A stretch of 64,000 nt of DNA, from contig CM068757.1 of NCBI GenBank assembly GCA_035084275.1, positions 5,952,001 to 6,016,000 of the forward strand. The letters run 5' to 3'. This DNA comes from Hydrolagus colliei. Its lineage: Eukaryota. Positions within the stretch are counted from its first letter, which is position 1. Each line of letters starts with the position of its first letter. Below, in pieces: positions 1 through 59,644 of the stretch. The notes beneath the pieces were generated by a model. It was not told the origin of the DNA. It made no database searches and was given only the letters and a program-made list of their open reading frames with translations. A program made the translations under genes and the position numbers.

Positions 1-1008
1 GATTTGAGCACCAGCCACTGCACCTCCCACGTGCTTCCAGAGATCAATGAAGGGTTTTCATTCCACGTGTCGGTAGCCAAAAATGATACTATCTACATAT
101 TGGGTGGTCATTCCATAGGAATGAATCACCGTCCTCCACGACTGCTTAGCCTACAGGTCGATCTGTCAGACCCACATCCGATTATCAGCTGCACAGTCCT
201 CAACAACGGCATCTCAGTATCAAGTGCCATCGTGACCCAGGCTGGCAGCAATGAGTTTATAATTCTGGGGGGCTATGAATCGGAGACTCAGAAGCGAATG
301 GCTTGTAACACCATCCGGCTTGAAAACGACAATATTCAGATCTTGGACAAGGAACCCCCAGCGTGGACCAGTGACCTCAGAGCCAGCAAAAGTTGGTTTG
401 GCAGTGACATGGGAAACCGAGCGGTATTAATAGGCATTCCAGGGGAGAACAAGCCGGATATGGGTGAAGCAAATTACTTCTACATTGCAACTTTCGGACA
501 GCCAGAGGGGAGAAGACGCATCCTTTCCAGCCAGGAATCCTTCACTGATCCAGAGGAGTCTAGCGCATTCGAGGATTCCGAAGAATTTCGCTTTGTCGTT
601 GAAACCCATGATTATAGCGACGACGAAGTTTACTTGGATAACGGTGATGAGGAAGGTTACTGGATTAAATGCATTGTAACCTGTAGCATAAACGTCAACA
701 CTTGGGTCCCTTACTACTCCACAGAACTCAATAAACCGGCTATGATCTTCTGCTCCAGTGGAGGAGGCGGTGGGCACTGGGTACACGCCCAGTGTATGGG
801 TCTCTCAGAGTTAGAGCTGATACAGCTTTCTCAGGAGAAGACCAAGTACTTTTGCAATGTTCATTGTATTGAGAAAGGACTTGAAACCCCGCAGAGGAAG
901 ATAAAGATAATGAAACGGACGCCAATGAAATCCCCGCGTAAAAAGTCGCCGGCCAGTCTGAAGAAGACGCCGATGAAGAAGAGCTTTCTGAAGAGACTAT
1001 TTGAATGA
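1..1008 (+). CDS. RAG2: V(D)J recombination-activating protein 2, 5'-truncated by window edge (C-terminal kelch blades, acidic hinge, PHD finger)
   Basis: Frame open from base 1 to TGA 1006-1008. Motifs SFHVSVAKNDTIYILGGHS, FEDSEEF, GYWIKC-x3-C, YSTELNKPAMIFC, GHWVHAQC, YFCNVH, the CDK site TPQR and C-terminal KKSFLKRLFE are all typical of RAG2. Confidence 0.99.
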   Translation, partial: DLSTSHCTSHVLPEINEGFSFHVSVAKNDTIYILGGHSIGMNHRPPRLLSLQVDLSDPHPIISCTVLNNGISVSSAIVTQAGSNEFIILGGYESETQKRMACNTIRLENDNIQILDKEPPAWTSDLRASKSWFGSDMGNRAVLIGIPGENKPDMGEANYFYIATFGQPEGRRRILSSQESFTDPEESSAFEDSEEFRFVVETHDYSDDEVYLDNGDEEGYWIKCIVTCSINVNTWVPYYSTELNKPAMIFCSSGGGGGHWVHAQCMGLSELELIQLSQEKTKYFCNVHCIEKGLETPQRKIKIMKRTPMKSPRKKSPASLKKTPMKKSFLKRLFE

Positions 1009-5761: not shown

Positions 5762-8700
5762 TTAAAAATCAATGGAGTCTTCTGGCTCTGGTGGTGAATC
5801 ATTTTGGGAGCTGCTGACAAATGGTGTTGAAGCAGACTCTGGTTGTTTCAGTGTGTTGTGTTGATTCATGAACCTTTGCAAGTACTTGGAAGTGTACAGC
5901 CAGTGGTGCTTCAGGATATCTTCCAGCTCATAGCTTTTAGACTGCCTTGCATTCATTTTCCTAAAACGTCGGAATAGCTTGTTGCCTGATTCGTTCCCTT
6001 CGCTCGCCCAAGCGCCTATGGAGCCATCTCGTTCGATGATCTCAGGAACATGGGCCAAGGTCTTGTGCAGGTAGTTTGTGATCTTCCCGTCATATCTGTG
6101 CTTGAACTTTGTAGAGAGCAATTCTGCAAACCTTTGGGAATGAAAGCTGTATTGGCACACAAGGTCCGGGCACTCCTTGATAGGAAAAGTGGAGCGCCAC
6201 ACAGGTTTCATCAGGATGTAAAGGGAAATGAGCTCTCTGAGAATTTCTCGCCTCTCCTCAGATGGAATTAATTCACACACCGCTTCGACGGTTTCTTTGG
6301 TCATCAGTTTTCTAGCAAAGTTTCCATTCATCTTCATGATAGGCTTCAGATTTATCCTCTTTCTCAGGTGCTGATCGAGCAGTACTTGCCACCTTTTCCT
6401 ATCCTCTTTGGACGGATTAGGGTTTATGTGGAGCTCCCCAATCTCATCTTGGAAGAGCTTGAAGAATTCTGTTGCGTTTCCAATATCGCAATGCAAGGCA
6501 TCAATGGAGGGCTGAGTTTCAATAAAAGGCTTGGCTGAGATGCCCTTCACTCTATCGCGGAGTAATTCAGGGGCCTCGTGATACGGGTTTGAGCGCCAAA
6601 TTTCATAGCGCTCACAGTTTTCTGTGTGGCTCCTGGTTATGGAATGGAGGGTCAAATTCTCTGAGGCCTCGCTGCGAGTGGAGTCACATAAAGTGCAAAC
6701 GTAGATCGAACCCGAGGCCTCGAGTCCTTCCACTTCACGCACAAACTTCTCATCATACCCTGTGCCTCGGAAGATGAATCGAAAGGACCTGAGCAAGTCG
6801 CCAATTTCAAGGATTAAATGACTTGCCTTTATGGCTTTCCTTTCGGTGATGACTGGCCCGAGCACTGCTGTCAGGATTTCATGATCAGATTCATCTGCCA
6901 GCATGAGGCAAAGAGGTTTGCAGCACAATTCAGAGTTTGGCTTCAATTCTTCAAATACCTTGACGCTCTCATTGTTTTGGTCCATGACGCTCACACTCAT
7001 GATTGTGAAGGAGTACCTCACTGCCTTTTCCGGGACAAGTGGACCGCAACCTTGCTTCTCGCTGACGTCTCCCATTCCATCGCAGGCCTCCTTGATCACA
7101 ACGGTGAATGGCCCACTCTCATACTCGTCCAAACCATGAGATTTCAGACCTTCTAAGATGTCTTCTTCGAGATCTTTTATGGTTGCGGCGAGTGCCACAT
7201 CATACCTAAACCGTCGGGAAATTGTGTTCATCGGATAATCGTCAATACACTGCGGCCAACAACTCAGACCATCTATTATTCCTACTTCAGTGTTAGTGGA
7301 GATATGTTCCAGTGGAGGCTGCCATTCGAATGGAAAATAACCAGGCAACAGAGTTTTCTCTGTAGTTCGGAGCGAATGTAATGGCTGGAAGATCTGCTTC
7401 CCAGTTGTTGCTTTGACCGTCCTGTACATTTTATGGTATTGACTGCAACTCAAGAACGTGTTGACTCTAATGGCAAGGCAGACTGCAGGTAGCAACCCTG
7501 ATCCTCTTCCCTGCATTACAGCCTCTAGCTCGTCTGCCTGTCTGTGTTCGTTTGCAGCTCTCAGAGCAAGTAGAAACAGAGTGAGACAAACCGACTTCAC
7601 GTCGCCCCCCTCTTCTTTCTCGGCAAAGGTTTTGACGTGAAGCTTGAGATCTCGCAGCCGATGCTTTTGAGCTCTTCGAGTTAAAGACAACAAGTGTAGC
7701 CTTGGCCGACCGCCCTTGTTTGTTGGCGAGTAAGCGTACTTTCCCGTGGTCTCTTTGTGGGTTTGGGCATGGATGGAATATTCGTCTAATCGCATCTCCT
7801 CTTTGCAGTCTGCCATTGGGCACTTTACCACAAGGGAGTTCAGAACGTGAGAGAAAGATTTGACGGGGTTTGTGAGCTCTGCCGAACAACAGGGAAACCT
7901 GCAAACTGGGCAATGCTTTCCGAGAACCGCAAGACATTTGAGAATGCACGTTCTGCAGGACAGGTGCATGCACGGTGATTGCACAGGGTCAGCAAGCAAA
8001 TGGTCACAAAGCTGACACGAGACCGACTGGAGAAAGTGGCGGGGATAGACATCCACAAGGAGGTTTGGACTCAGATGGAGCTTCTTGCAGTTGACCACTT
8101 TCTTAGCCAACAGAATGCTTGTGTTGTTCTTCTGATCTCTTCTTTTGACGACTTTCGGTCTGATCGGGAGGTCGACGGCAACCTTTGTCTTTTTGGGGAC
8201 CGGCGGACTTCTTCCCAGGCCCTTTCTCTTGTGAGTTCCTTTCGAAGAGTTGCAAACTCCGCAGTGGTTGGAATGAGGCTTCCAGCGCACAAATTTATTG
8301 ATGGGAAAAAACGCGTCTTCATTGGTTGTATTACTGATCGTCTGAATGGCAATGCGCCAGCAGCTGTGGCAGAAGTGGGTGGGGTGGACGGTCTCTATGT
8401 CTCTCTTGACGTCTACTTTGAATGTGTTATGGATGAGCTCCGGCCAAAAGTAATCCCCGTGTCCCATTTTCCGAAGAACCTCTTGGGTGACTTCATCCAC
8501 TGGGCCACTGACTGCATACTTCATGTCATAGTGGCTGGTGTTAAAGGAAGCTCCGCAAATGCGACAGAGGTTCTGCAAATGCAATCTGTGGTCTTCCAAA
8601 GATTTGGATTCCACTTGGTTGGATTCGGGGAGCTGAGTATTCATTGGGGTGTACTCCAAAGGTTTGCCTATCTGAACAAACTTGTTGTATTGCAGCTTAT

Positions 8701-8929
8701 CTTCCAAAGTCTTCTTGTCCAGAGGCAAGGTCTCCAAAGGGATGGTTCCCATTGTCTGGGTTTGAGATAGACCAGGTTTAAACTGCATGCTATGGGCAGC
8801 CATGGTAACCAAGGGCTCCATCGGGTAACATTTTGCCTTTGACATCTTGTCTTCCCATTCGATTTTTCTGAAAGGCACGGTTTCCGCGCACCTCGCCTTT
8901 TCAGGCATACTGCACGATGGCACCTCCAT
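5762..8929 (-). CDS. RAG1: V(D)J recombination-activating protein 1, single coding exon, 1055 aa
   Basis: ATG at 8929 (the ORF-track start at 8938 is TTG). C3HC4 RING (CQLC..CMH..CRTC..CPVC), nonamer-binding GGRPR, catalytic DDE in [16 protein letters not shown] and GNESGNK, Zn ligands CTLC and LHKTLAH, C-terminal EDSIDF. Confidence 0.99.
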
Positions 8930-9820
8930 TTGTTTCAAATGTTGACACCTACCAAAGGCATAAAAAGACGCTCTATTTAAAACCGAGTGCGTAACAATGC
9001 TCCAAGACTTAAGCTTTACCCATTATAACACACTCTCGTTCATTCCTGAAATCCTCGGGGAATTCTATTCTGCAAACCTCCATTGCAGCAAATTTTATGA
9101 TTCACTCTGCAATGCACCAAAACAGGGTGTTTCCTCCCCACCTGCCCCTGAATATATTGCTGTTGAATATAGATATAGATAACTATCTGAAGACAATTTT
9201 GCCTGTGACTCATTGTGGTATTTAGCAGCCTGTCATGTTCCATACTAATGCTGACCAGGATTTCAACGAGTTTCTTGGAAGAAAAAAGCATTAGCTGATG
9301 CAGCTGCACCATCTAGCTCCTGAACCAGTAACAACACATCTTATGTCTCATATACCGAGGGCTTATCTAGCACACACCGGAGCGTAGGAGGAGTACTGTG
9401 ATTGGAATTACCCAGTTACCACTTTTGAACTTGGCACAGCACAACATGTTTGATGTGAAGTAATCTCTGTCATTTACAAACCGCTTCAGTGAGATATAAA
9501 GGATAGCCAGCAATAGATAGCGACAAAAGGCAAAGATTTAATCAAATCTACTTTCCTTGAGTTTTCAGATGGGGGAATTTGATTTTATCCCCCCATGGCA
9601 TATTCTTCCGAAAGCATGCATTAAAAACCACATCAGTTTTGTTTATATTATTTATAATTATTCTAATATATGTAAAAAGGATGAAATGATATCTATGCAG
9701 TCAACATTGTGTGGATTACAATCTTATATATCTGCTTCCAGCTTACAATCATCCACGTTCTATTAAAAGCAAGCAACAGGAATTAAACTCTTCCAAAAAT
9801 TATCTGTAACTGTAAACAAT

Positions 9821-30300: not shown

Positions 30301-31255
30301 AGGCAAGGTACCACTAATGCCAAGAGGTGAATAACAAAGTGATCTGGAGCTGGTCAGGACACCAGTAGAAACTCCCCTTCTCCTTTACAATGGTGCGGTT
30401 GGGAAATGCTCAATATCTATCTACGTGGGGTGGGGGGGGGTGGGGGCCTCAATTCCAGACCCGGCCTCTGTCACCCTTCTCCCCACATCCCAAGGATGAC
30501 ACCTTCATTAATAATAATAATCCTTGCATTTGTTATCATTTGATATAGCGCTTTTCACGTCTTCTAGACATCTCAAAGCGTTTCACAGAATATACTGTAT
30601 ATTGTATATTGATTATATATTGTAATTGGCTGTAGGTAACACACCTCCGACAATAATGCGTTTCACCCACATACATTCAGTCAATTCACTTTACAGTGTA
30701 ATTCTGTGAAGCGCTTTGAGGCGTCTAGAAGTCGTGAAGGCTATATCCAATGCAAGGCTTATTATTCGTAGTACATGTCATTATGTTTCTATTATTGTTA
30801 TTAGTGTCACCCACCCACTCCTGTTAACGGTGTTTGGGTACACCGTGCCCCCCCCCCCCCCCCCCCCCCACACATCACCACCCCCCACCCCCACCCACCC
30901 CAGAAGGGAGTGCCAGCCGCGGACCCTGGCGGCGAGACCTCTCGGGGCGGAAACAACGGGTGCCTCGATTATCACGAAAACGGGACCAGATGTTGTTGCT
31001 GTTGTTGGTATAAGTTGTTGTTGGTTCTGAATCTATCCGAAGGTCAAACCGCGGCTCCCGGTCACACACTTTGCCGAGGGGGGAAGGGGGGGGGGGGGGG
31101 GGGGGGGGGGGGGAGAGGAGGGGGGGGGGGGGGGCGGTGATGATAACGCCCTCCCCCCCCCCCCCACCCCATTCCCACCCCCCGCGTCTCTCACCCAGTC
31201 TCCTGAGGTGACTCGCAAAGCCGGCCCGAGCGAGACCGAGCAGACTGGCCGCCAT
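27302..31255 (-). CDS. NDUFS3: NADH:ubiquinone oxidoreductase core subunit S3 (30 kDa), 261 aa, 7 exons
   Basis: Exons 31255-31195, 30133-30071, 29636-29539, 29378-29229, 28428-28303, 28109-27990, 27469-27302 (786 nt, GT-AG, in phase). [79 protein letters not shown]. Confidence 0.97.
30508..30770. mobile_element. Two inverted SINE 3' halves in NDUFS3 intron 1
   Basis: Minus copy about 30508-30600 and plus copy about 30670-30770, both with the family tail. Confidence 0.8.
30847..31190. repeat. Long poly-C and poly-G runs in NDUFS3 intron 1
   Basis: C-runs near 30847-30900 and 31150-31183; G-runs 31077-31135. Confidence 0.9.
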
Positions 31256-31620
31256 GGCAACGGAACCGGAAAGCAGCCCTTCAGCGTCCGTCCAGCAAAA
31301 GGATCCGGGCGGAGGCGGCGCGTGCTGTCCCCGTGTAAACCTCATCCCCCCCCCCCCCCCCCCCCACACTCCTCCCATCAGACAGTTAGACAGCCGTCTG
31401 GTGTCCCCGTGTAAACCTTCCCCCCACCCCACCCCTTCCTCCTCCTCCTGCCATCAGATAGTCAGTCAGTCAGGCGCCTGGTGTGTCCCCCACCCCGTGT
31501 AAACCTTCCCCCTCCATCTCCCATCAGACTGACAGACAGACAGACAGTCAGACAGACACCTGCCTGCTCTGAACGGGAGGAAACCTTTGGATCCTCAGCA
31601 CAGGCCCCCGGACGCTTTGG
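31256..31620. promoter_or_regulatory. CpG-rich bidirectional promoter region of NDUFS3/KBTBD4 with three imperfect 70-90 bp repeats
   Basis: Head-to-head genes; CCGGAA (ETS/GABP-like) near 31266; CCCCGTGTAAACC..C-run..CCATCAGA.AG repeated three times in 31325-31560; candidate KBTBD4 exon 1 donor TGG|GTGAGG at 31620/31621. Confidence 0.6.
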
Positions 31621-32315
31621 GTGAGGTGAGGGGCGTTAGACCCGGCGAAATAAACCTGATGGGATTCGAATGGAGAAAGAGGGAGGGAAGGATTAAAATC
31701 TCCCCTCCTCCAACCCCGCCCTGAAGTCCATGCTTCTGTCTCTTTCTGTCTGTCTGTCTCTCTCTCTGTCTCTCTGTGTGTGTGTGTGTGTCTCTCTGTC
31801 CGTGTGTGTCTCTTGCCTGTCTCATTTCCCAAGCCCAGTGTAAGGGAGGTTATTTTGTGGGATCTTGTCATGCTTTGTGCAAATTCTGTTACACTGTACA
31901 CACACATTCAACACACCCCTCCACCCTCCACACCCCACCCCCACAAAAAAATATAGTCACTACATCTACAGTAAATACAGTGAAATGCTTTAAAATATGT
32001 TGACTTGAATGCTCATCAAGTGCAATAGAGGCAAAAGGTTTGACAATACTTTTCCCCTTGTCTCAGGCCTTGCTTCCTCCCCAGTCCGGCTCGGAAAGGC
32101 CAAGGCTGTAATGTGTGTGTGCGTGTGAGTGAGAGAGATGGATTTGGTCACTCAATCCTCCACTCACGGTTTGTGGGCCACTAACTGTGCGCAATTGGCT
32201 TCGTCCACAAAATTCGCAGTCACTGCAATTTACAATATATTTCTGTGTTGCACTTTGCTTTGAGATGTTTCAACGATGTGATAAGGTGCTCCTATCAAAA
32301 TCAAGCATTGTTATA

Positions 32316-33257: not shown

Positions 33258-35765
33258 ATGGAGCCAAGTGGAGACGCAGGAGGAGCAACCATTGCTGGTC
33301 CTACAGATGAAAGTTACTTTGTGAGCTACACCTTCACGGATAAGTTACATTCGGCACGCGTTGCACAAAGTATTATGGATCTGTGCCTCGAGGACAGACA
33401 ATTTGCAGATGTTGTTATCTCTGTAGAAGGCAAAGATTTCCAGCTCCATCGGCTGGTGCTTTCTGCTCAGAGCTGCTTCTTCCGCTCCATGTTCACCTCA
33501 AACTTAAAGGAAGCTCGTAATCAGTTTATAGAACTCAAAGATGTGAATGCCAGTGTCTTTCAGCTCCTAGTGGATTATATTTATCGGGGGTCTGTAAAGC
33601 TGAGGGTAGAGGACCTTCAGGACATGTACGAGGTGGCAGACATGTACCAGTTGACCTCACTCTTTGAGGAGTGTTCTCGTTTCCTAGCTCGGACAGTCGA
33701 CGTCAGGACGTGTTTGCAGGTCATGTGGTTAGCAGATCAACACAGCGACCAGAAGCTCTACACAGCAGCAAAGCAATGTGCAAAGACACACCTGTCGCAG
33801 GTTCACCAGACGGAAGACTTCCTGGAACTGCCTTTGAGACTCCTCACAGACATCATCAAAGGTACCAGATTTTTCCATTGCAGTTTTACTTAACAATCAT
33901 ACATGGACATTTGAGGGAGCCTCAAAAGGTTAGAGAGTGTACAGGTCATTTGGGGATAAGACCTGTAGATTTCTCCAAAAGAAATGACTTTAATAATTAC
34001 AATAATCCTATCGCACTTTTCTAGACGTCTCAAAAAGCACTTCACACAATATACTGTAAAGTTAATTGACTGTACATTTGCGGGCGAAATGCGGCAAGCA
34101 ATTGCGCACATCACTCAGGTTGAGTTAAAATGTCTAAATTTCTGCCAAAATAATGCAAGGAAATTGAATAACATTTTATTTCAAAATCCTCTAGATGGTG
34201 TTCCCAGTTCTCAAAAGCCAGCAAAAGCCATAGAAGCTTGGATAGAGCACAACAAGGAAGAGCGAGCAGGACTCTCTGAGACCCTGACATCCAGCCTAAA
34301 GGTGCTGACCTTTAAAGTTTGTGAATGAATGTAAAATGGATGTTTCGTACTGACTGGAGTAAAGTTATCAAAAAATGATCCACATGGGGTTCAAAAATCT
34401 ACATTAATTTCCATAATTGTTGAGGAAGTTTGTGGTGAGATATGAGCAACCAATTAAAATTGCTAGATAAAGGGTTTACTAAATCCAACTATCAAAGCTG
34501 CTATTGGTAAAATTGCAGATACAGTAGTTCATGTAAGATGTTGAAGACTGGGACATTCTATTTTTGAGTCTTTTATTTTTATATCATCAGCCATGTACCT
34601 TTCTTGAAACAGTTGGATCAAAGCTGGTGATATAAACATGGCTTTTTGTGCCCAGTGGGTAAGCAGCCTTTGTCCTGGTTCACCAATTACAGACAGCACA
34701 TTTTGTTTCAGCCTCTCGGTTTTACTGGTGCTGCCAATATCAAACACAAAAATTCAATTAACTCTTTCACTGCTTGATATAAAACACAAACCAATCATTC
34801 TGTCTGAAAAAGAAAAAGCTATGAATCAAGTTTTTAGTCGAAAGAAGATGCAAATTGTATTAAACAGCTAATTTTACTGACCATATTGCAATTTTTGTTT
34901 CAAACAGGAGATCAGTGAAATTGTTCATATCTATCTGATTGGGAAGGAAGACACACGGACACACTCTCTGGCAGTTTCCCTGCACTGCGGTGACGACACA
35001 ATCAGTGTCAGTGGGCAGAATAGGCTTCGGCAGCAGATCACGGCTGCGTGCAAGCACGGCAGCGACCTGTACGTGGTGGGAGGCCCCATCCCGCGTCGCA
35101 TGTGGAAGTGCAATATGGAGACGATGGACTGGGAACAGTGCGCATCCCTGCCAAGAGATCGCCTTCACCACACACTGGTGTCCGTGCCGAGTGAGGGTGC
35201 CATTTACTCACTGGGCGGCAAAACCCTCCAGGATACACTCTCCAGTGCGATCATGTACTACCAAGTGCGTGATAACGTTTGGGTGGAGACCAATCAACTT
35301 GACACGGCAGTTTCATCTGCCGCGGGTGTCAACCTTAACGGGACAATCTATCTTCTGGGCGGAGAGGAGAATGACCTGGACTTCTTTACAAAACCATCCC
35401 GTCTCATCCAGTGCGTTGACACGCAATCGAGGACGTGCCACTTGAAGTCATACCTCCTTCCCTTCGCCGGGCGAATGCACGCAGCCATTCACAAGGACTT
35501 GATCTTTATTGTGGCCGAGGGCGATTCTTTAGTGTGCTACAATCCGCTACTTGACAGCTTCACGAGACTGCGTTTCCCAGAGGTTTGGAGCCGTGTTCCC
35601 TCCCTCTGGAAGATCGCAAGCTGCAACGGCTGTATCTATGTATTCAGAGACAAATGTAAAAAGGGGGATGCCAATACATTAAAACTGAATCCTGCCACGT
35701 CTGTGGTTTCAGTGATACGTGGATTTGAGATACTGTTGACAAATTGGCAGTTTGTCTTGGCTTGA
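33258..35765 (+). CDS. KBTBD4: Kelch repeat and BTB domain-containing protein 4, 522 aa, 3 coding exons
   Basis: Exons 33258-33861, 34195-34301, 34908-35765 (1569 nt, in phase). BTB FQLHRLVLSAQSCFFRSMFTSNLKEA; kelch LYVVGGPIPRRMWKC, GGEENDLDFFTKPSRLIQC; C-terminal LLTNWQFVLA. Confidence 0.98.
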
Positions 35766-41200: not shown

Positions 41201-41870
41201 CCAGAAGTTCCCCTTCCATGTGTCTGTGTGTGTGTGTGTGTGGAGGGGTGGTGACATTAACCAGTGTGTGTATGTGTGTGGGGGGGGGGGGGGTTGACAT
41301 TGACCTGTGTCTGTGTGTGTGTGTGTTGGGGCTGTGTTAGTGTGTGTAGGCAGTGTGTGTGGGGGGGGGGGGGGGGGGGGAAGGGACTGTGTGGTGGGGG
41401 GGAACTGTGTGTGTATGGGAGGAGGGACTGTGTTAGTGTGGGGGGGCGGGCGGAGGGGACTGTGTATGTGTGTGGTGGTGTGGGACTGTATGTGTGTGGT
41501 GGGGGGGAAAGGACTGTATGTGTGTGTATGGTGGGGGGGGGGAAACTTTGTGTGTGTGTTGGGGGGGGGACTGTGTATGTGTGTGGTTGGGGGGAGGGAA
41601 GGGACTGTGTGTGTGTGGTTGGGGGGAGGACTGTATATGTGTATGTGTGTGGTTGGGGGGAGGGAGGGAAGGGACTGTGTGTGTGTGTTGGGGGATGGGG
41701 CAGAGGCTCAGCCTGGCTCCTACCTCCTGGGTGAGGGAGCGGAAGGGCAGCGCCCCCAGAATCACCGTCTCGTCGATCCTATCGTACCAGTGTCGGCCGT
41801 AGACCTTGGTCATGAGGACATTGTACAGGAGAGTGGGGTAGAAGACAACCCGAGCCAGGACTCCCGCCAT
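38284..41870 (-). CDS. PTPMT1: Mitochondrial phosphatidylglycerophosphatase / protein tyrosine phosphatase 1, 186 aa, 4 exons
   Basis: Exons 41870-41724, 40899-40819, 39674-39483, 38424-38284 (561 nt, in phase). [35 protein letters not shown], intact active site [22 protein letters not shown]. Confidence 0.96.
38735..39290 (-). mobile_element. CR1 LINE 3' fragment in PTPMT1 intron 3
   Basis: ORF 38888-39208 [53 protein letters not shown] is the CR1 ORF2 C-terminus; 3' end GGGCCGAATGGCCTACTGCTCC near 38745-38770. Confidence 0.92.
41221..41700. repeat. GT/G-run minisatellite in PTPMT1 intron 1
   Basis: About a dozen variable units of GGGACTGT(GT/AT)n..TGG(T)TG-run. Confidence 0.9.
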
Positions 41871-42019
41871 CCCCCGGGCCCCGCATCCCGCCCAAAACAC
41901 ACTTCCGGTGACAAGCCAGGGACCCCGGATGAGTCCTCGGAGCATGCGCAATGTCGCTCCCCCCCCCCCCCCCCCCCCCCCACCCGCATTGGCTTGTCAT
42001 TGGATCCTGAGCATCAACA

Positions 42020-42910
42020 ACAATAATAACAACATGATAACCACAAGAACAATAATATCAACAACAACATAAATAACAATATCAACAATATCAATAATAT
42101 CAACAATAATAACAACAATAATAATAACGACAACAACAAAATTACATTTATGGAGCGCCTTTCACCTCGGGAGGACGTCCCAAGGTCGGGACCCGAGCGG
42201 ACGATTGCGCACAGCGGTGTCCCACAAACTGTCGTGGATTGAAAGGAACTATTTATTATTGTTTATGTTTCTTTTCCTCTTGAGGGATATATCGTAGCGC
42301 ACCCAGGTTTCTCGCTTGCGAGGCGTGCGCTCTGACCACTGAGTTACAGGCCTCCACATGACATTTGTATAGTGTGTTTCACGTTGGGAGGATGCCCCAA
42401 GCTGCTGGATGGTCAGAGTTTTGGACCTGAACTGGAGATCAGGGAAGGTGGAGGGGAGGTGGCGAGGGGGGGCTGTGGTGGAGTGGTTTTGAATGATAGC
42501 ACGGTCAAAGTGGAGGGTTTTGAGGGGGGACTTGAAGGAGTTTAGGGAGAGGGCTTGTTTTCTTGTCTCCACATCCCTCCACTTACCTCTCTCATCTCTC
42601 TCCTCACAACAGTACCCATTGCCTTCGCTCTACTGGGTCTGGCCTCCTCCTTGTCCCCGAATCCTTCGCTCCACCATAGTGCCTTCAGCCACTACGCCCC
42701 GAGGCTCTAGAACTCCCTTCCTTACACCCTTCACCTCGACACCTTCTCTTCCTACTTTCAGGTCTCGGCTAAAGACCTTTCTTTTTGACCGCGCTTTTGG
42801 TCACCTTTTTCCCCTTTCCCCTGGCTCGGCCCCGGGATCCGTTATTGGGAAGCACTCTGAGACGCCACCCGGCATGGAGGGCACTATGTGAATCCAAGTT
42901 GTTATTGAGG
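42020..42910. mobile_element. Cluster of SINE/L2 fragments upstream of PTPMT1, including a long (AAC/AAT)n tail and inverted L2 pieces
   Basis: (AAC/AAT)n 42020-42140; L2/SINE tail to 42240; SINE head about 42297-42357 (-); L2 about 42400-42560 (-) and 42615-42907 (+). Confidence 0.8.
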
Positions 42911-55374: not shown

Positions 55375-57726
55375 CTATAAAGTTGTCTCATATTCTACAA
55401 TTCTCTGGTTTCCAGCTACGCAGGGTGAGCTCCGATCAGAGTACCTCTGGTTATTCTCCCTTTGCCACACTTCGCCATTTGTGGAATTAACGTCAACTTT
55501 GATTTCATCTTCCGTGTCATACTCAGTTAAGACTTCTTCACCATTTGCCTCAAGAATACATTCAGATCCTTGCATTGTGTGACTTTGCTCCGTGGTTTGC
55601 TGCAAGACGTATAAAACAGCATCGTGGACACTGTTGAAAGTAAAGGTTTGTTTGGTGGTTTTGAAGTAATCGTGTTCTCTTAAGCCATTTAAAACTGCGT
55701 TAGAACAACTGGTGAGGACAAAGTCAATCCCTTTACATTGGTATTCCTTAAACAAGCATATTAGACCTTTAGCCCCTGCATCATCTATAAAACTAATTGA
55801 TCCACAATCCAAAATGACAGTATGTACGTTAGCAATATGTATGGATCTTCTGTGTCTGTACAGCGCTGTGTGACTAATCCGCCTCAGTGCATTTTCATCC
55901 AATGCAAGGAATTGCGTGGATTCCCGTAACATATTATCTTTGTCTTCTTCACTGTACGCGGCACTCTCAGCTCTCGAATTCCCGCTGGGCAGAAGCGAAC
56001 TACTCACTTTGCGTTTCACCCAGGCCAAAAAAAAATCAACGTTGCCATAATAAACAGAATCGAAGGTTTTTATCATTTTAATTCCCAGTATCTCTTTGGC
56101 GGACTTCTCGAAGGACAAGTCGGTGTAGGTCTCTGTGTTGGGAATGTGGCCCAATATGGCAATCGAAGGTCTTTGAAGTCTGTGGAGAGCGAGCAAAAGG
56201 GAAAAGAATACACCAACTGCTAAACCAATATCAATCCCGAGGAGACACACCGAGGCAAATGTAACAATTCCCGCCAGAAAATCGTATTTGTTCCTCCTGC
56301 ACACAAAACAGTACTTCCTGAAGAACTCAAAGTAACAACCCAGGTTTGCGATTACAATCGCACCGAGGACAGTTTTGGGCACAAGTGGAAGGAAGAATTG
56401 GCCGCAGCACAGAGCAGTAAGGCAAAGACTTGCCGCTACCAAGCCTGAGCCTTGGGTTTGACCCCAACCTTTTCCTTGCACCACTGTTTGCTCACAAACT
56501 CCAGAGACGGCAAAAGCACCCAGAAACGAGAGGACCAGGTCACAAAACCCTAAAACCACAGTCTCGCGATGCGGGTGATAACTCTGACTGTGCTTTTTGG
56601 AGATCTCATTCCCCATTGAGGAACTCACGACAAAAGTCACCAATGCAATGGAAACAGCATCTGCGATAACACTGGCTATTAAGGAGAGCGAAGGGAGGAC
56701 GAGCTGCGGGGCAGTAAATGGATGGCTGTTTATCAGCCGGAAATTATAGTTGTCCTCCAGATCCAACCAGAATGTCATCCCGATGGCGATAGCCATGACA
56801 ATGAACTCTATGGGTAAGAGATGCCTACTGTAATTATAGTTTATTACCTTCAAAGGAATCAGAAATGCTAATGTGGCTATACCAGTAATGAGAGAGCCAA
56901 TGTTTATTTCATCACTTTCAATGAGATCCTTGAGAGTGTAGACAAGTGCCAACGGGCCATGATGGATTGAACCGTCAACACCAAGCAATATGGTCAGCAG
57001 GATGATTATTAAATTAATAGCCGTCCCTGCTTTGAAGCCATCCATGACGGGCTTGGAGATGTACATCCGCAGGAAACTCAGGCGGAAAATCCCCATTAAA
57101 ATCAAAATCGTTCCAGAGACACAAGTGAGAGTAACCACATGCAGCTCCCTTGAGCATTTTGGAGAACAGTCGCTGTCAGAAACAAGCTCCTCGGATTCCA
57201 TGTGGCCAACGTGTTTGGCAACGAGCAAAGCAGTGAATGCAGACGCACCGTAGGACATGTGTTGCGTTGTTCCAAGCAAGCAATATAAGACTGTAGTGAT
57301 CAAACTTGTGTAGAGTCCATTAATAGCTGGCTGCCCTGCAATGACTCCATATGCCAGGGATAACGGAATAGTTAAAAGGCCCACACTGAGTCCCGACAAT
57401 AGGTCGCCCAACAACCATGTTTTGACTTTGTACCCATAAAACCAATTAAGGAAAGGGAATGTGCTCCAAACCAGCTTCTTTACATTGTGCGAGACCGGTA
57501 AATTTAGCTCAGAAATCCTGCTCTCATATTTGGCCAGTTTTTCTTCATTATGGCCATCTAAGCGTTCACAGTACGGGATGCTGAGAGTGAATGACACTCG
57601 ATGTGCTGTCTTCTTATTGAAGTTGTAGTTCCTGTCGGTTCTGATCAGAGGGACACTCGAACCGGACGGATCTTGAATGACATCGCTGGACCAGAAGGAT
57701 TCTGAACTTCCCAACGTATTTGCCAT
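55375..57726 (-). CDS. Intronless divergent SLC26 (SulP) family protein with STAS domain, 783 aa
   Basis: ATG 57726 in strong context (ACCACGATGG). FPFLNWFYGYKVKTWLLGDLLSGLSVG, GLYTS..LYCLLGTTQHMSYG, QTQGSGLVA, VPKTVLGAIVIANL, DFLAGIVTF..LLGIDIGL, LQRPSIAILGHIPNTETY; STAS HTVILDCGSISFIDDAG. Subfamily not assignable by eye. Confidence 0.93.
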   Translation of the reverse strand: MANTLGSSESFWSSDVIQDPSGSSVPLIRTDRNYNFNKKTAHRVSFTLSIPYCERLDGHNEEKLAKYESRISELNLPVSHNVKKLVWSTFPFLNWFYGYKVKTWLLGDLLSGLSVGLLTIPLSLAYGVIAGQPAINGLYTSLITTVLYCLLGTTQHMSYGASAFTALLVAKHVGHMESEELVSDSDCSPKCSRELHVVTLTCVSGTILILMGIFRLSFLRMYISKPVMDGFKAGTAINLIIILLTILLGVDGSIHHGPLALVYTLKDLIESDEINIGSLITGIATLAFLIPLKVINYNYSRHLLPIEFIVMAIAIGMTFWLDLEDNYNFRLINSHPFTAPQLVLPSLSLIASVIADAVSIALVTFVVSSSMGNEISKKHSQSYHPHRETVVLGFCDLVLSFLGAFAVSGVCEQTVVQGKGWGQTQGSGLVAASLCLTALCCGQFFLPLVPKTVLGAIVIANLGCYFEFFRKYCFVCRRNKYDFLAGIVTFASVCLLGIDIGLAVGVFFSLLLALHRLQRPSIAILGHIPNTETYTDLSFEKSAKEILGIKMIKTFDSVYYGNVDFFLAWVKRKVSSSLLPSGNSRAESAAYSEEDKDNMLRESTQFLALDENALRRISHTALYRHRRSIHIANVHTVILDCGSISFIDDAGAKGLICLFKEYQCKGIDFVLTSCSNAVLNGLREHDYFKTTKQTFTFNSVHDAVLYVLQQTTEQSHTMQGSECILEANGEEVLTEYDTEDEIKVDVNSTNGEVWQRENNQRYSDRSSPCVAGNQRIVEYETTL

Positions 57727-59644
57727 CGTGGTGATATTCCCTTGGTTTCTTCTTCTTTGTTCTCTGATGCATAGATCAGAGATGCAATCCAGTGAACTAA
57801 ACACAAGACAGAGAAAAGTAAGCTTTACCCTTTTCAATTCGTGTTTTTAATTTTTTTGCAGTAACGACAGTACAATATTGTTCAATATTGTTATTGAATA
57901 CAAAGGGTTTCAAATTCTGATTGGGGAAAGGTTTCCACTGTTGACGCAAATAACATTTGTGTCTGCAGTGTTGAGAGATAAAGCTCTGAGAAACTATCCT
58001 GGGTGATGGACGCTATATAAGTGCAAGCTGTTTTAGAACACCTACTGAAAAGGGGTGGTGGGGTGGAAATGGGAGGGAATATACTACTTTCTACTTTCAC
58101 ATGTGGCAAGACAGTAGAACAAGAGGAAGCAGAGTTAAAGATACAATTTTAATATAAAGCAATTTCAAGATAGACACCCATGCTATTTTACCTGGGTGGT
58201 GGTGGTGGAGGGGAGGGGGTTGGGCAGGGTGGGTGGGTGGAGAGAGAGATTACAAAGAGCAATTAAGTGAATACTTTTTTAGTGGGGAGATCTCTGGATC
58301 CGCAAGTTCATCAAACACAATAAGCCCTTTCAGCTGGAAATTTGTGATAAACTGGGCCTGTCAGACTCTCGGGAACTCGAGGCAAATGGTTGTGAGAAGT
58401 TTGAATGTACTGGATGTACATTTAGAAAGCAAATGGTGAATAAGCCACTGTGTTGTCATGCAAACAAACAAGTAAGAGAATCAGACAACAGCCATAAAAT
58501 AAAAATCACAACTTAACTTCCAGGCACAGCTTTCTGTTTATAACACTGCAGCTGCAAAGCACAGCACGGTGCAAAGGCTTAACATGCAACAGGACAAACA
58601 TAACAGACTCCCATTAGCCTGCTGGAACTATCAATCCGCCCTCGTAACCAATTAATCTCAAGTCATATCTATAGGGTTTATTTAATATTTTATATTGGCC
58701 CCGTTATAGGAGTGGAAATAGTAATAATGGAAACAATTTTATTTCTTCAATAAACAGTAAATCTCTTAGCAGTAAAATTTACTTTTAAGAAGAATACATT
58801 GTCAACAGCAATGCCCCCTCAGTGCTCAATCGTGGCGGAGTATGTTATTACGATCTTCAGCAAGGGTGAAAGAATTGCCAGTAATTTACAGTCCCCAGTG
58901 ACAGATTCTATTTGCCTCATACATATGATAGAAGCCAAAGCTGCCTAATAAATTGTGCAAACACTTGCAAACACATGTGAAAGAATACTGTTGTGCATTA
59001 TGAAATCACCACTTTACCAAAGAGCTGGAAAACCGTGCACTCGAACTCTAGTTGTTAACCCAATGAATAAAGGATTTTCACAATCTAAAGGAATTAAGTT
59101 GCCAGTTATGAATAAAATACCATCTGTCACATTTTTGACTCCTTTTTTCCCCACTTACCCACTTTGCTGGATTTCTATCTGCTGTGTTTATGCTCATCAG
59201 GGCGGCTGAGGTGGTGTGTACGTTAATGCAATGATAGCCTGGAAGATGAGTCTCAGAAAGAGAGTTTTGAAGATCAATTGTAGTATCCCTAATAAGGGCT
59301 AATGTGTAGGCTCCAATCTCTGCCAGAAATAGACATGATATCTTAGGCTGTTCGTAACCACTTCTAGAACAGCTGGGGTTTCCTATCAACTGTCTGCTGC
59401 CAAAGTTCCACTCTCGGCATTTAAGTATCGCTCAAACAGGTTAAATGTCTGTGGGTTGTGTTTTTGAAAAATATATTAAGGATAAATCAAATAGTTCATA
59501 TGTCAGGAAAATGCATAACCTATTACAGTATATTCATACTTGAACACAATTAGCCTTGCCATATTCAATTATTCCATATTTTGAATGTGTTGTTATAATT
59601 TAGCACAATTTAAGTAAACAAATAAAAACAACTTTACGCTAAAT

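Follow-up and report, generated by a model that had tools for sequence, protein, structure and literature searches.

In the RAG1 recombinase of jawed vertebrates, the arginine at position 848 of the mouse protein is known as a "gatekeeper": it is highly conserved and represents the only suppressive adaptation against transposition that is still considered specific to jawed vertebrates (PMC10629977). Structural work, as summarised in PMC6854553, also places this residue in cation-pi and electrostatic contact with the scissile phosphate and the heptamer. The RAG1-like (RAG1L)/ProtoRAG transposases and the engineered mouse variant R848M carry a methionine at the same site. The 848-855 loop of the ZnH2 region, to which the site belongs, lies at the active site/target-DNA pocket, and it is Met, not Arg, that promotes the target-DNA bending required for transposition (PMC10629977). 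Here we describe the RAG1 gene of the chimaera Hydrolagus colliei, encoded in a stretch of 64,000 nucleotides (GenBank assembly GCA_035084275.1, contig CM068757.1, positions 5,952,001 to 6,016,000; hereafter the window), in which this site is occupied by lysine. A first-pass annotation of this DNA had noticed the Lys codon and proposed that it might reflect a stage of RAG domestication that is intermediate or relaxed. The observation is confirmed and its interpretation partly supported. Incomplete domestication is not supported, and what remains is of more modest interest: the gatekeeper may be Arg or Lys and is not strictly Arg.

The RAG1 positions on which the comparison is built are the following:

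5762..8938, minus strand: RAG1 coding open reading frame (ORF), 1058 codons, uninterrupted, counted from the first in-frame TTG
6332..6334, minus strand: codon AAG for K869, corresponding to mouse R848/human R851, the transposition gatekeeper (phmmer and MAFFT)
7079..7081, minus strand: D620, corresponding to catalytic D600 (MAFFT)
6752..6754, minus strand: D729, corresponding to catalytic D708, within GTGYDEK (MAFFT)
5990..5992, minus strand: E983, corresponding to catalytic E962 (MAFFT)
5987..5989, minus strand: S984, corresponding to S963 and adjoining E983 (MAFFT)
6929..6931, minus strand: E670, corresponding to E649, in the context KPNSELCCK (MAFFT)

The minus strand reads ...ctg aag cct atc atg AAG atg aat gga aac ttt... 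between 6360 and 6301, which places AAG at 6334..6332. Neither frameshifts nor Ns occur in the 3.2-kb ORF, which is intact. Pfam assigned it to RAG1 (PF12940; E = 0, 1215 bits) and additionally detected the RAG1 importin-binding region (PF12560), zf-RAG1 (PF10426) and a C3HC4 RING domain (PF00097). Against PDB, phmmer aligned the protein with 1443 bits to residues 100-1012 of full-length mouse RAG1 (6oem_A/9jpu_A, 1040 aa). Within this alignment, query residues 815-914 match mouse residues 794-893 without any gap, setting K869 opposite R848, and a separate MAFFT alignment with the mouse and human proteins equally equated K869 with mouse R848 and human R851. In the latter alignment the catalytic residues D600, E662, D708 and E962 are all conserved (D620, E683, D729 and E983), as are the coupled-cleavage pair E649/S963 (E670 and S984) and H795. 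E649 has been described to play a role in coupled cleavage and to suppress transposition modestly (PMC10629977). The nonamer-binding domain opens with a GRPR/K motif, where the alignment to mouse GGRPRQHLLS is identical. The first-pass annotation was thus accurate as to the codon and its coordinates, its equivalence to mouse R848 and human R851, and the canonical state of the DDE triad and of the E649 equivalent. The substitution is present in the assembly and does not make the protein a statistical outlier.

We compared the site with its counterparts by an exhaustive HMMER search with the RAG1 core of the window, covering 1.84 billion representative proteins. Among the distant RAG1-like sequences (<50% identity), 66 extend over the column, and most of these carry Met (52), followed by Q (three), K (two), D (two) and singletons, with E, A, G, T, S and F among the residues. 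A RAG1-like protein from a sea urchin has Met aligned opposite K869. Two invertebrate-type RAG1-like fragments (P0372 and P0418; 29-30% identity) show Lys in place of the usual Met, in the context L/F-K-MPGNY. In R848M and RAG1L/ProtoRAG the hydrophobic Met permits target-DNA bending and transposition, whereas the window has a cationic Lys. The window also differs from RAG1L/ProtoRAG in having the recombinase-type E649 and S963 equivalents, the acidic hinge of RAG2 and an acidic RAG1 C-terminal tail, which contains no Cys or His motif and hence no CCGHC of the RAG1L type. Neither a hydrophobic residue at 848 nor an uncharged one at the 649 position, which is occupied by the charged E670, was found here. 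As to the terminal inverted repeats that flank a RAG1L-RAG2L pair, the window begins within RAG2 and does not extend to the flank on the RAG2 side.

The closest protein is the RAG1 of another holocephalan, Callorhinchus milii (XP_007886047.1; P0136, locus L001), with 91% identity in the core and 89% over 1058 aa. A maximum-likelihood (ML) tree of 49 RAG1 proteins joins the window to Callorhinchus as its sister (100*) within the chondrichthyan clade (100*); the two terminal branches are of similar length (0.075 for the window, 0.068 for Callorhinchus), and synonymous divergence (dS) between the two genes is 0.32, which points to a chimaeroid from outside Callorhinchidae. Both loci have the same domain order, a convergent RAG2 downstream and identical flanks of the site (NLKPIM-x-MNGNF). 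However, at 848 Callorhinchus RAG1 has Arg (AGG) against Lys (AAG) in the window, and at 609 it has His against Gln (CAA). The coding DNA of the shark Heterodontus and the skate Amblyraja likewise has AGG where the window has AAG, the flanking codons being otherwise conserved. Since these two and Callorhinchus all have AGG, Lys is derived, by one G>A transition on the lineage of the window after its split from Callorhinchus. Arg is also found in all other sampled elasmobranchs, the coelacanth, lungfish, ray-finned fishes, amphibians, non-avian reptiles and mammals. With Arg in the sister holocephalan, in the elasmobranchs and in every non-avian bony vertebrate sampled, parsimony on these sequences makes it the ancestral state for Holocephali, Chondrichthyes and gnathostomes. 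We also considered a CpG-driven mutation as the origin of the change and rejected it: the mutated G sits in an A-G-G context.

This polarity bears directly on the proposal that Lys is an intermediate or relict between the Met of the transposases and the Arg of the recombinase, or that it signals relaxed domestication. In favour of the proposal, holocephalans branch off deep among gnathostomes, and the residue matches neither Met nor the canonical Arg; even a codon path ATG->AAG->AGG would be feasible. The tree polarity, however, runs the other way, with Arg in the sister holocephalan, in six elasmobranchs and in the sampled non-avian bony vertebrates, and we regard this proposal as extremely improbable. 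The attractive idea of a chimaera that preserves a half-domesticated RAG is thereby removed.

To read column 848 across jawed vertebrates, we relied on the MAFFT alignment together with a loosened motif; a strict motif regular expression had missed half of the sequences. The 272 other jawed-vertebrate RAG1 sequences covering the site comprise 264 with Arg and eight with Lys, and nothing else. All eight Lys sequences are from birds (P0055, P0139, P0140, P0142, P0145, P0148, P0149 and P0046). Lys was found in 7/7 oscine passerines sampled (Lamprotornis, Prunella, Ptilorrhoa, Lanius, Callaeas, Corvus and Haemorhous), which span Corvides and Passerida. The eighth sequence is that of the jacamar Galbula dea, whose sister Bucco has Arg. 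The three suboscines (Pitta, Formicarius and Willisornis) have Arg, as do all other sampled birds. At the codon level, AAG is found in Corvus hawaiiensis (L004; XP_048163425.1) and Galbula dea (L005), and AGG in Pitta sordida (L006). The bird proteins resemble that of the window in carrying a natural Lys obtained via AGG>AAG; they differ from it in their independent origins within birds and in keeping His at 609. Oscine RAG1 furthermore has Leu at 847, which is also present in Pitta. Placed on the ML tree, the Arg and Lys states need three separate R>K changes, and a starred branch forces each of them, so that Lys has arisen at least three times: in the chimaera lineage, on the oscine stem and in Galbula. 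The overlap of these lineages at 848 results from ascertainment and is itself no evidence of convergence beyond the tree count. No other column was found altered in all three Lys lineages, i.e. there is no sign of a shared compensatory change among the aligned columns. Met was found in none of the sampled gnathostome RAG1 proteins, though AGG>ATG is a single step.

Oscines include a very large share of living birds and have normal V(D)J-based immunity; Lys at 848 thus recurs in vertebrates with a working adaptive immune system. Judged from this sampling, it is not a strict Arg at 848 that defines jawed-vertebrate RAG1 but a cationic residue, Arg or Lys, and the RAG1 of the window qualifies. 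Selection at this site would maintain a long cationic side chain and exclude the transposition-permissive hydrophobic residue, because only Arg and Lys occur and AGG>AAG took place three times, the equally short step AGG>ATG never. The gatekeeper is not invariant, and its constraint narrows from "arginine" to "long cationic side chain". The oscine, Galbula and chimaera proteins can be looked upon as natural R848K variants.

The RAG1 of the window is under purifying selection. Omega (NG86 method) between the window and Callorhinchus is 0.161, with 0.095-0.137 for other chondrichthyan pairs. With elasmobranchs as outgroups, 25 amino-acid changes were assigned to the branch of the window and 26 to that of Callorhinchus (12 and 10, respectively, in the core). 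At near-invariant columns the window deviates in 7/164 (rank 8 of 121), position 848 being one of the seven; rays and skate match it, with seven deviations in Narcine, eight in Hemitrygon and nine in Amblyraja. Relaxed selection on this gene, which we tried as an explanation, was rejected on the grounds of this omega and of the balanced changes on the two sister branches. R848K accordingly ranks among a small set of private substitutions, and the gene gives no sign of decay. Purifying selection is consistent with a functional, orthologous chimaera RAG1 that would cleave recombination signal sequences (RSSs) and support V(D)J recombination. These values also speak against the relaxed or intermediate state put forward in the first-pass annotation, as does the independent appearance of Lys in two bird lineages. 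Its other premises fared better: Arg is indeed typical of jawed vertebrates and Met of RAG1L, the gene does come from an early-diverging gnathostome lineage, and the caveat that Lys is a conservative change was sound. It had also stated that Lys would lose its novelty if already common and characterised. Common it is, and the novelty is reduced, because every sampled oscine and Galbula carry it; characterised, as far as the accessible literature goes, it is not (see below).

Other elements that restrain transposition have to be considered along with position 848, among them those of RAG2, which lies tail-to-tail with RAG1 (4.75 kb between the end of RAG2 and the RAG1 stop, convergent):

1..1008, plus strand: RAG2, C-terminal 335 codons, cut by the start of the window (Pfam)
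442..471, plus strand: RAG2 kelch blade-6 B6-C6 loop region, GENKPDMGEA (approximate), ungapped to mouse ~333-342 and of equal length
505..654, plus strand: RAG2 acidic hinge, 50 aa, 18 Asp/Glu (36%), 4 basic residues
655..891, plus strand: RAG2 PHD finger (Pfam RAG2_PHD), fragment residues 219-297

The fragment was recognised by the Pfam families RAG2 (E = 1e-77) and RAG2_PHD (E = 3e-39) and aligned with 367 bits to mouse RAG2 residues 191-527. A role in transposition suppression has been reported for the B6-C6 loop (PMC10629977).

We consider it likely that in the chimaera Lys replaces Arg at 848 without material loss of function, as a conservative and near-neutral change. According to this proposal, a single AGG>AAG transition would have swapped the gatekeeper Arg for Lys after the split from Callorhinchus. 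Lys would keep the positive charge, the long side chain and the electrostatics at the scissile phosphate. The hydrophobic contact by which Met stabilises bent target DNA would be missing with Lys, as it is with Arg. The other layers of suppression, i.e. E649/S963, the acidic hinge of RAG2, the B6-C6 loop of blade 6 and the PHD finger, are in place. Lys thus probably behaves like Arg, supporting V(D)J cleavage and still suppressing transposition, because Met but not Arg promotes bending of the target DNA.

A second change in the same protein deserves mention in this context:

7052..7054, minus strand: codon CAA for Q629, at the position of mouse H609 (motif comparison and coding DNA)

H609 is part of the 608-611 loop and is listed among the residues that position the RSS heptamer (PMC6854553). 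Gln at this position is unique to the window, His being found in 266/266 other gnathostome RAG1 sequences with a match to the motif around it (267 in all); the codon is CAC in Callorhinchus and CAT in Heterodontus and Amblyraja. H609Q is therefore rarer than R848K, and it is located in a neighbouring DNA-contacting loop.

An alternative is that Lys is functionally meaningful: it would relax the block on transposition in part, or retune heptamer/hairpin chemistry, perhaps together with H609Q, and would be tolerated because the RAG2 hinge, the blade-6 loop and the PHD finger still suppress transposition in vivo. R848 and the 608-611 loop are both situated at the heptamer/active site (PMC6854553), and both are changed in the lineage of the window. 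Arg is strongly preferred, so Lys is perhaps slightly inferior or different. The stem of the oscines carries only nine fixed RAG1 changes, and no more than two of these, A630S and R848K, fall in the core. On the other hand, the charge is conserved, no column co-changed in all three Lys lineages, no acceleration of rate is seen, and the immunity of oscines is normal. We hold a functional role of this kind to be unlikely. Still less credence is given to the more specific claim that K848, alone or with H609Q, measurably weakens suppression or alters heptamer/hairpin chemistry. If it were true, the chimaera, and in the case of K848 all oscines, would recombine with a leakier RAG transposase that is checked only by the RAG2 hinge, loop and PHD finger.

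Several points weigh against a near-neutral replacement of Arg by Lys. Arg is kept in 97% of the sampled sequences, and the equivalence of Lys to Arg may be incomplete. The active-site region is somewhat out of the ordinary, as the heptamer-contacting loop close by carries H609Q. By our own delimitation, the RAG2 hinge of the window (50 aa, 36% acidic; mouse delimited in the same way, 62 aa and 40%) falls slightly below the jawed-vertebrate range in the literature, 52-62 aa and 39-44% (PMC10629977), in both length and acidity, a feature that would also suit a functional role of Lys. In the accessible full-text literature we found neither an assay of R848K nor one of another relevant R848 substitution, and the primary papers on R848, which lie outside that literature, may contain an R848K test. 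Finally, the codon is known from one assembly and differs by one base from the AGG of the sister species, as would be expected of an assembly or sequencing error, or of a heterozygous or rare allele of the individual. Searches with RAG1 fragments of 317 aa and 112 aa for partial or Logan-derived sequences recovered no further holocephalan RAG1, and a search for the exact protein of the window among independent assemblies returned no identical record. We nevertheless take an error or a private allele to be very unlikely: the ORF is intact, the transition lies outside any homopolymer, and the identical change in independently assembled bird genomes indicates that it is biologically tolerated.

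The coding ORF of RAG1 opens with an in-frame TTG, and its first ATG is codon 4. Directly upstream (window 8920..9000, minus strand), a pyrimidine-rich tract ending in TAG/G precedes the opening of the ORF (...LKQME...), which is the point where the Callorhinchus annotation splices on an upstream exon of 40 aa. Instead of using the first ATG within the ORF, RAG1 may have its true start in such an upstream exon, as in the Callorhinchus annotation. Next to catalytic D708, L711F was examined as a possible oddity of the protein and dismissed, as Met is common at this position and Phe recurs in Scyliorhinus and Bufo.

The remainder of the window contains the following features:

33258..35765, plus strand: exons of a KLHL-type gene (BTB/BACK and kelch repeats; ORFs)
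55375..57837, minus strand: SLC26 anion-transporter ORF, 820 aa, uninterrupted (Sulfate_transp and STAS)
30848..31809 and 41311..42139: low-complexity intergenic DNA, with a 57-G homopolymer, poly-C tracts and GT/GGGG-rich tandem repeats of 25-34 bp, followed by an (AAC/AAT)n array

The SLC26 ORF, ~46 kb from RAG1, has prestin, SLC26A6 and pendrin as its best relatives of solved structure. Since several exons are the rule in vertebrate SLC26 genes, it may represent a retrogene or a paralogue lacking introns. Besides the KLHL-type ORFs of the window, it may be noted that an ETS/SAM_PNT gene lies upstream of RAG1 in Callorhinchus.

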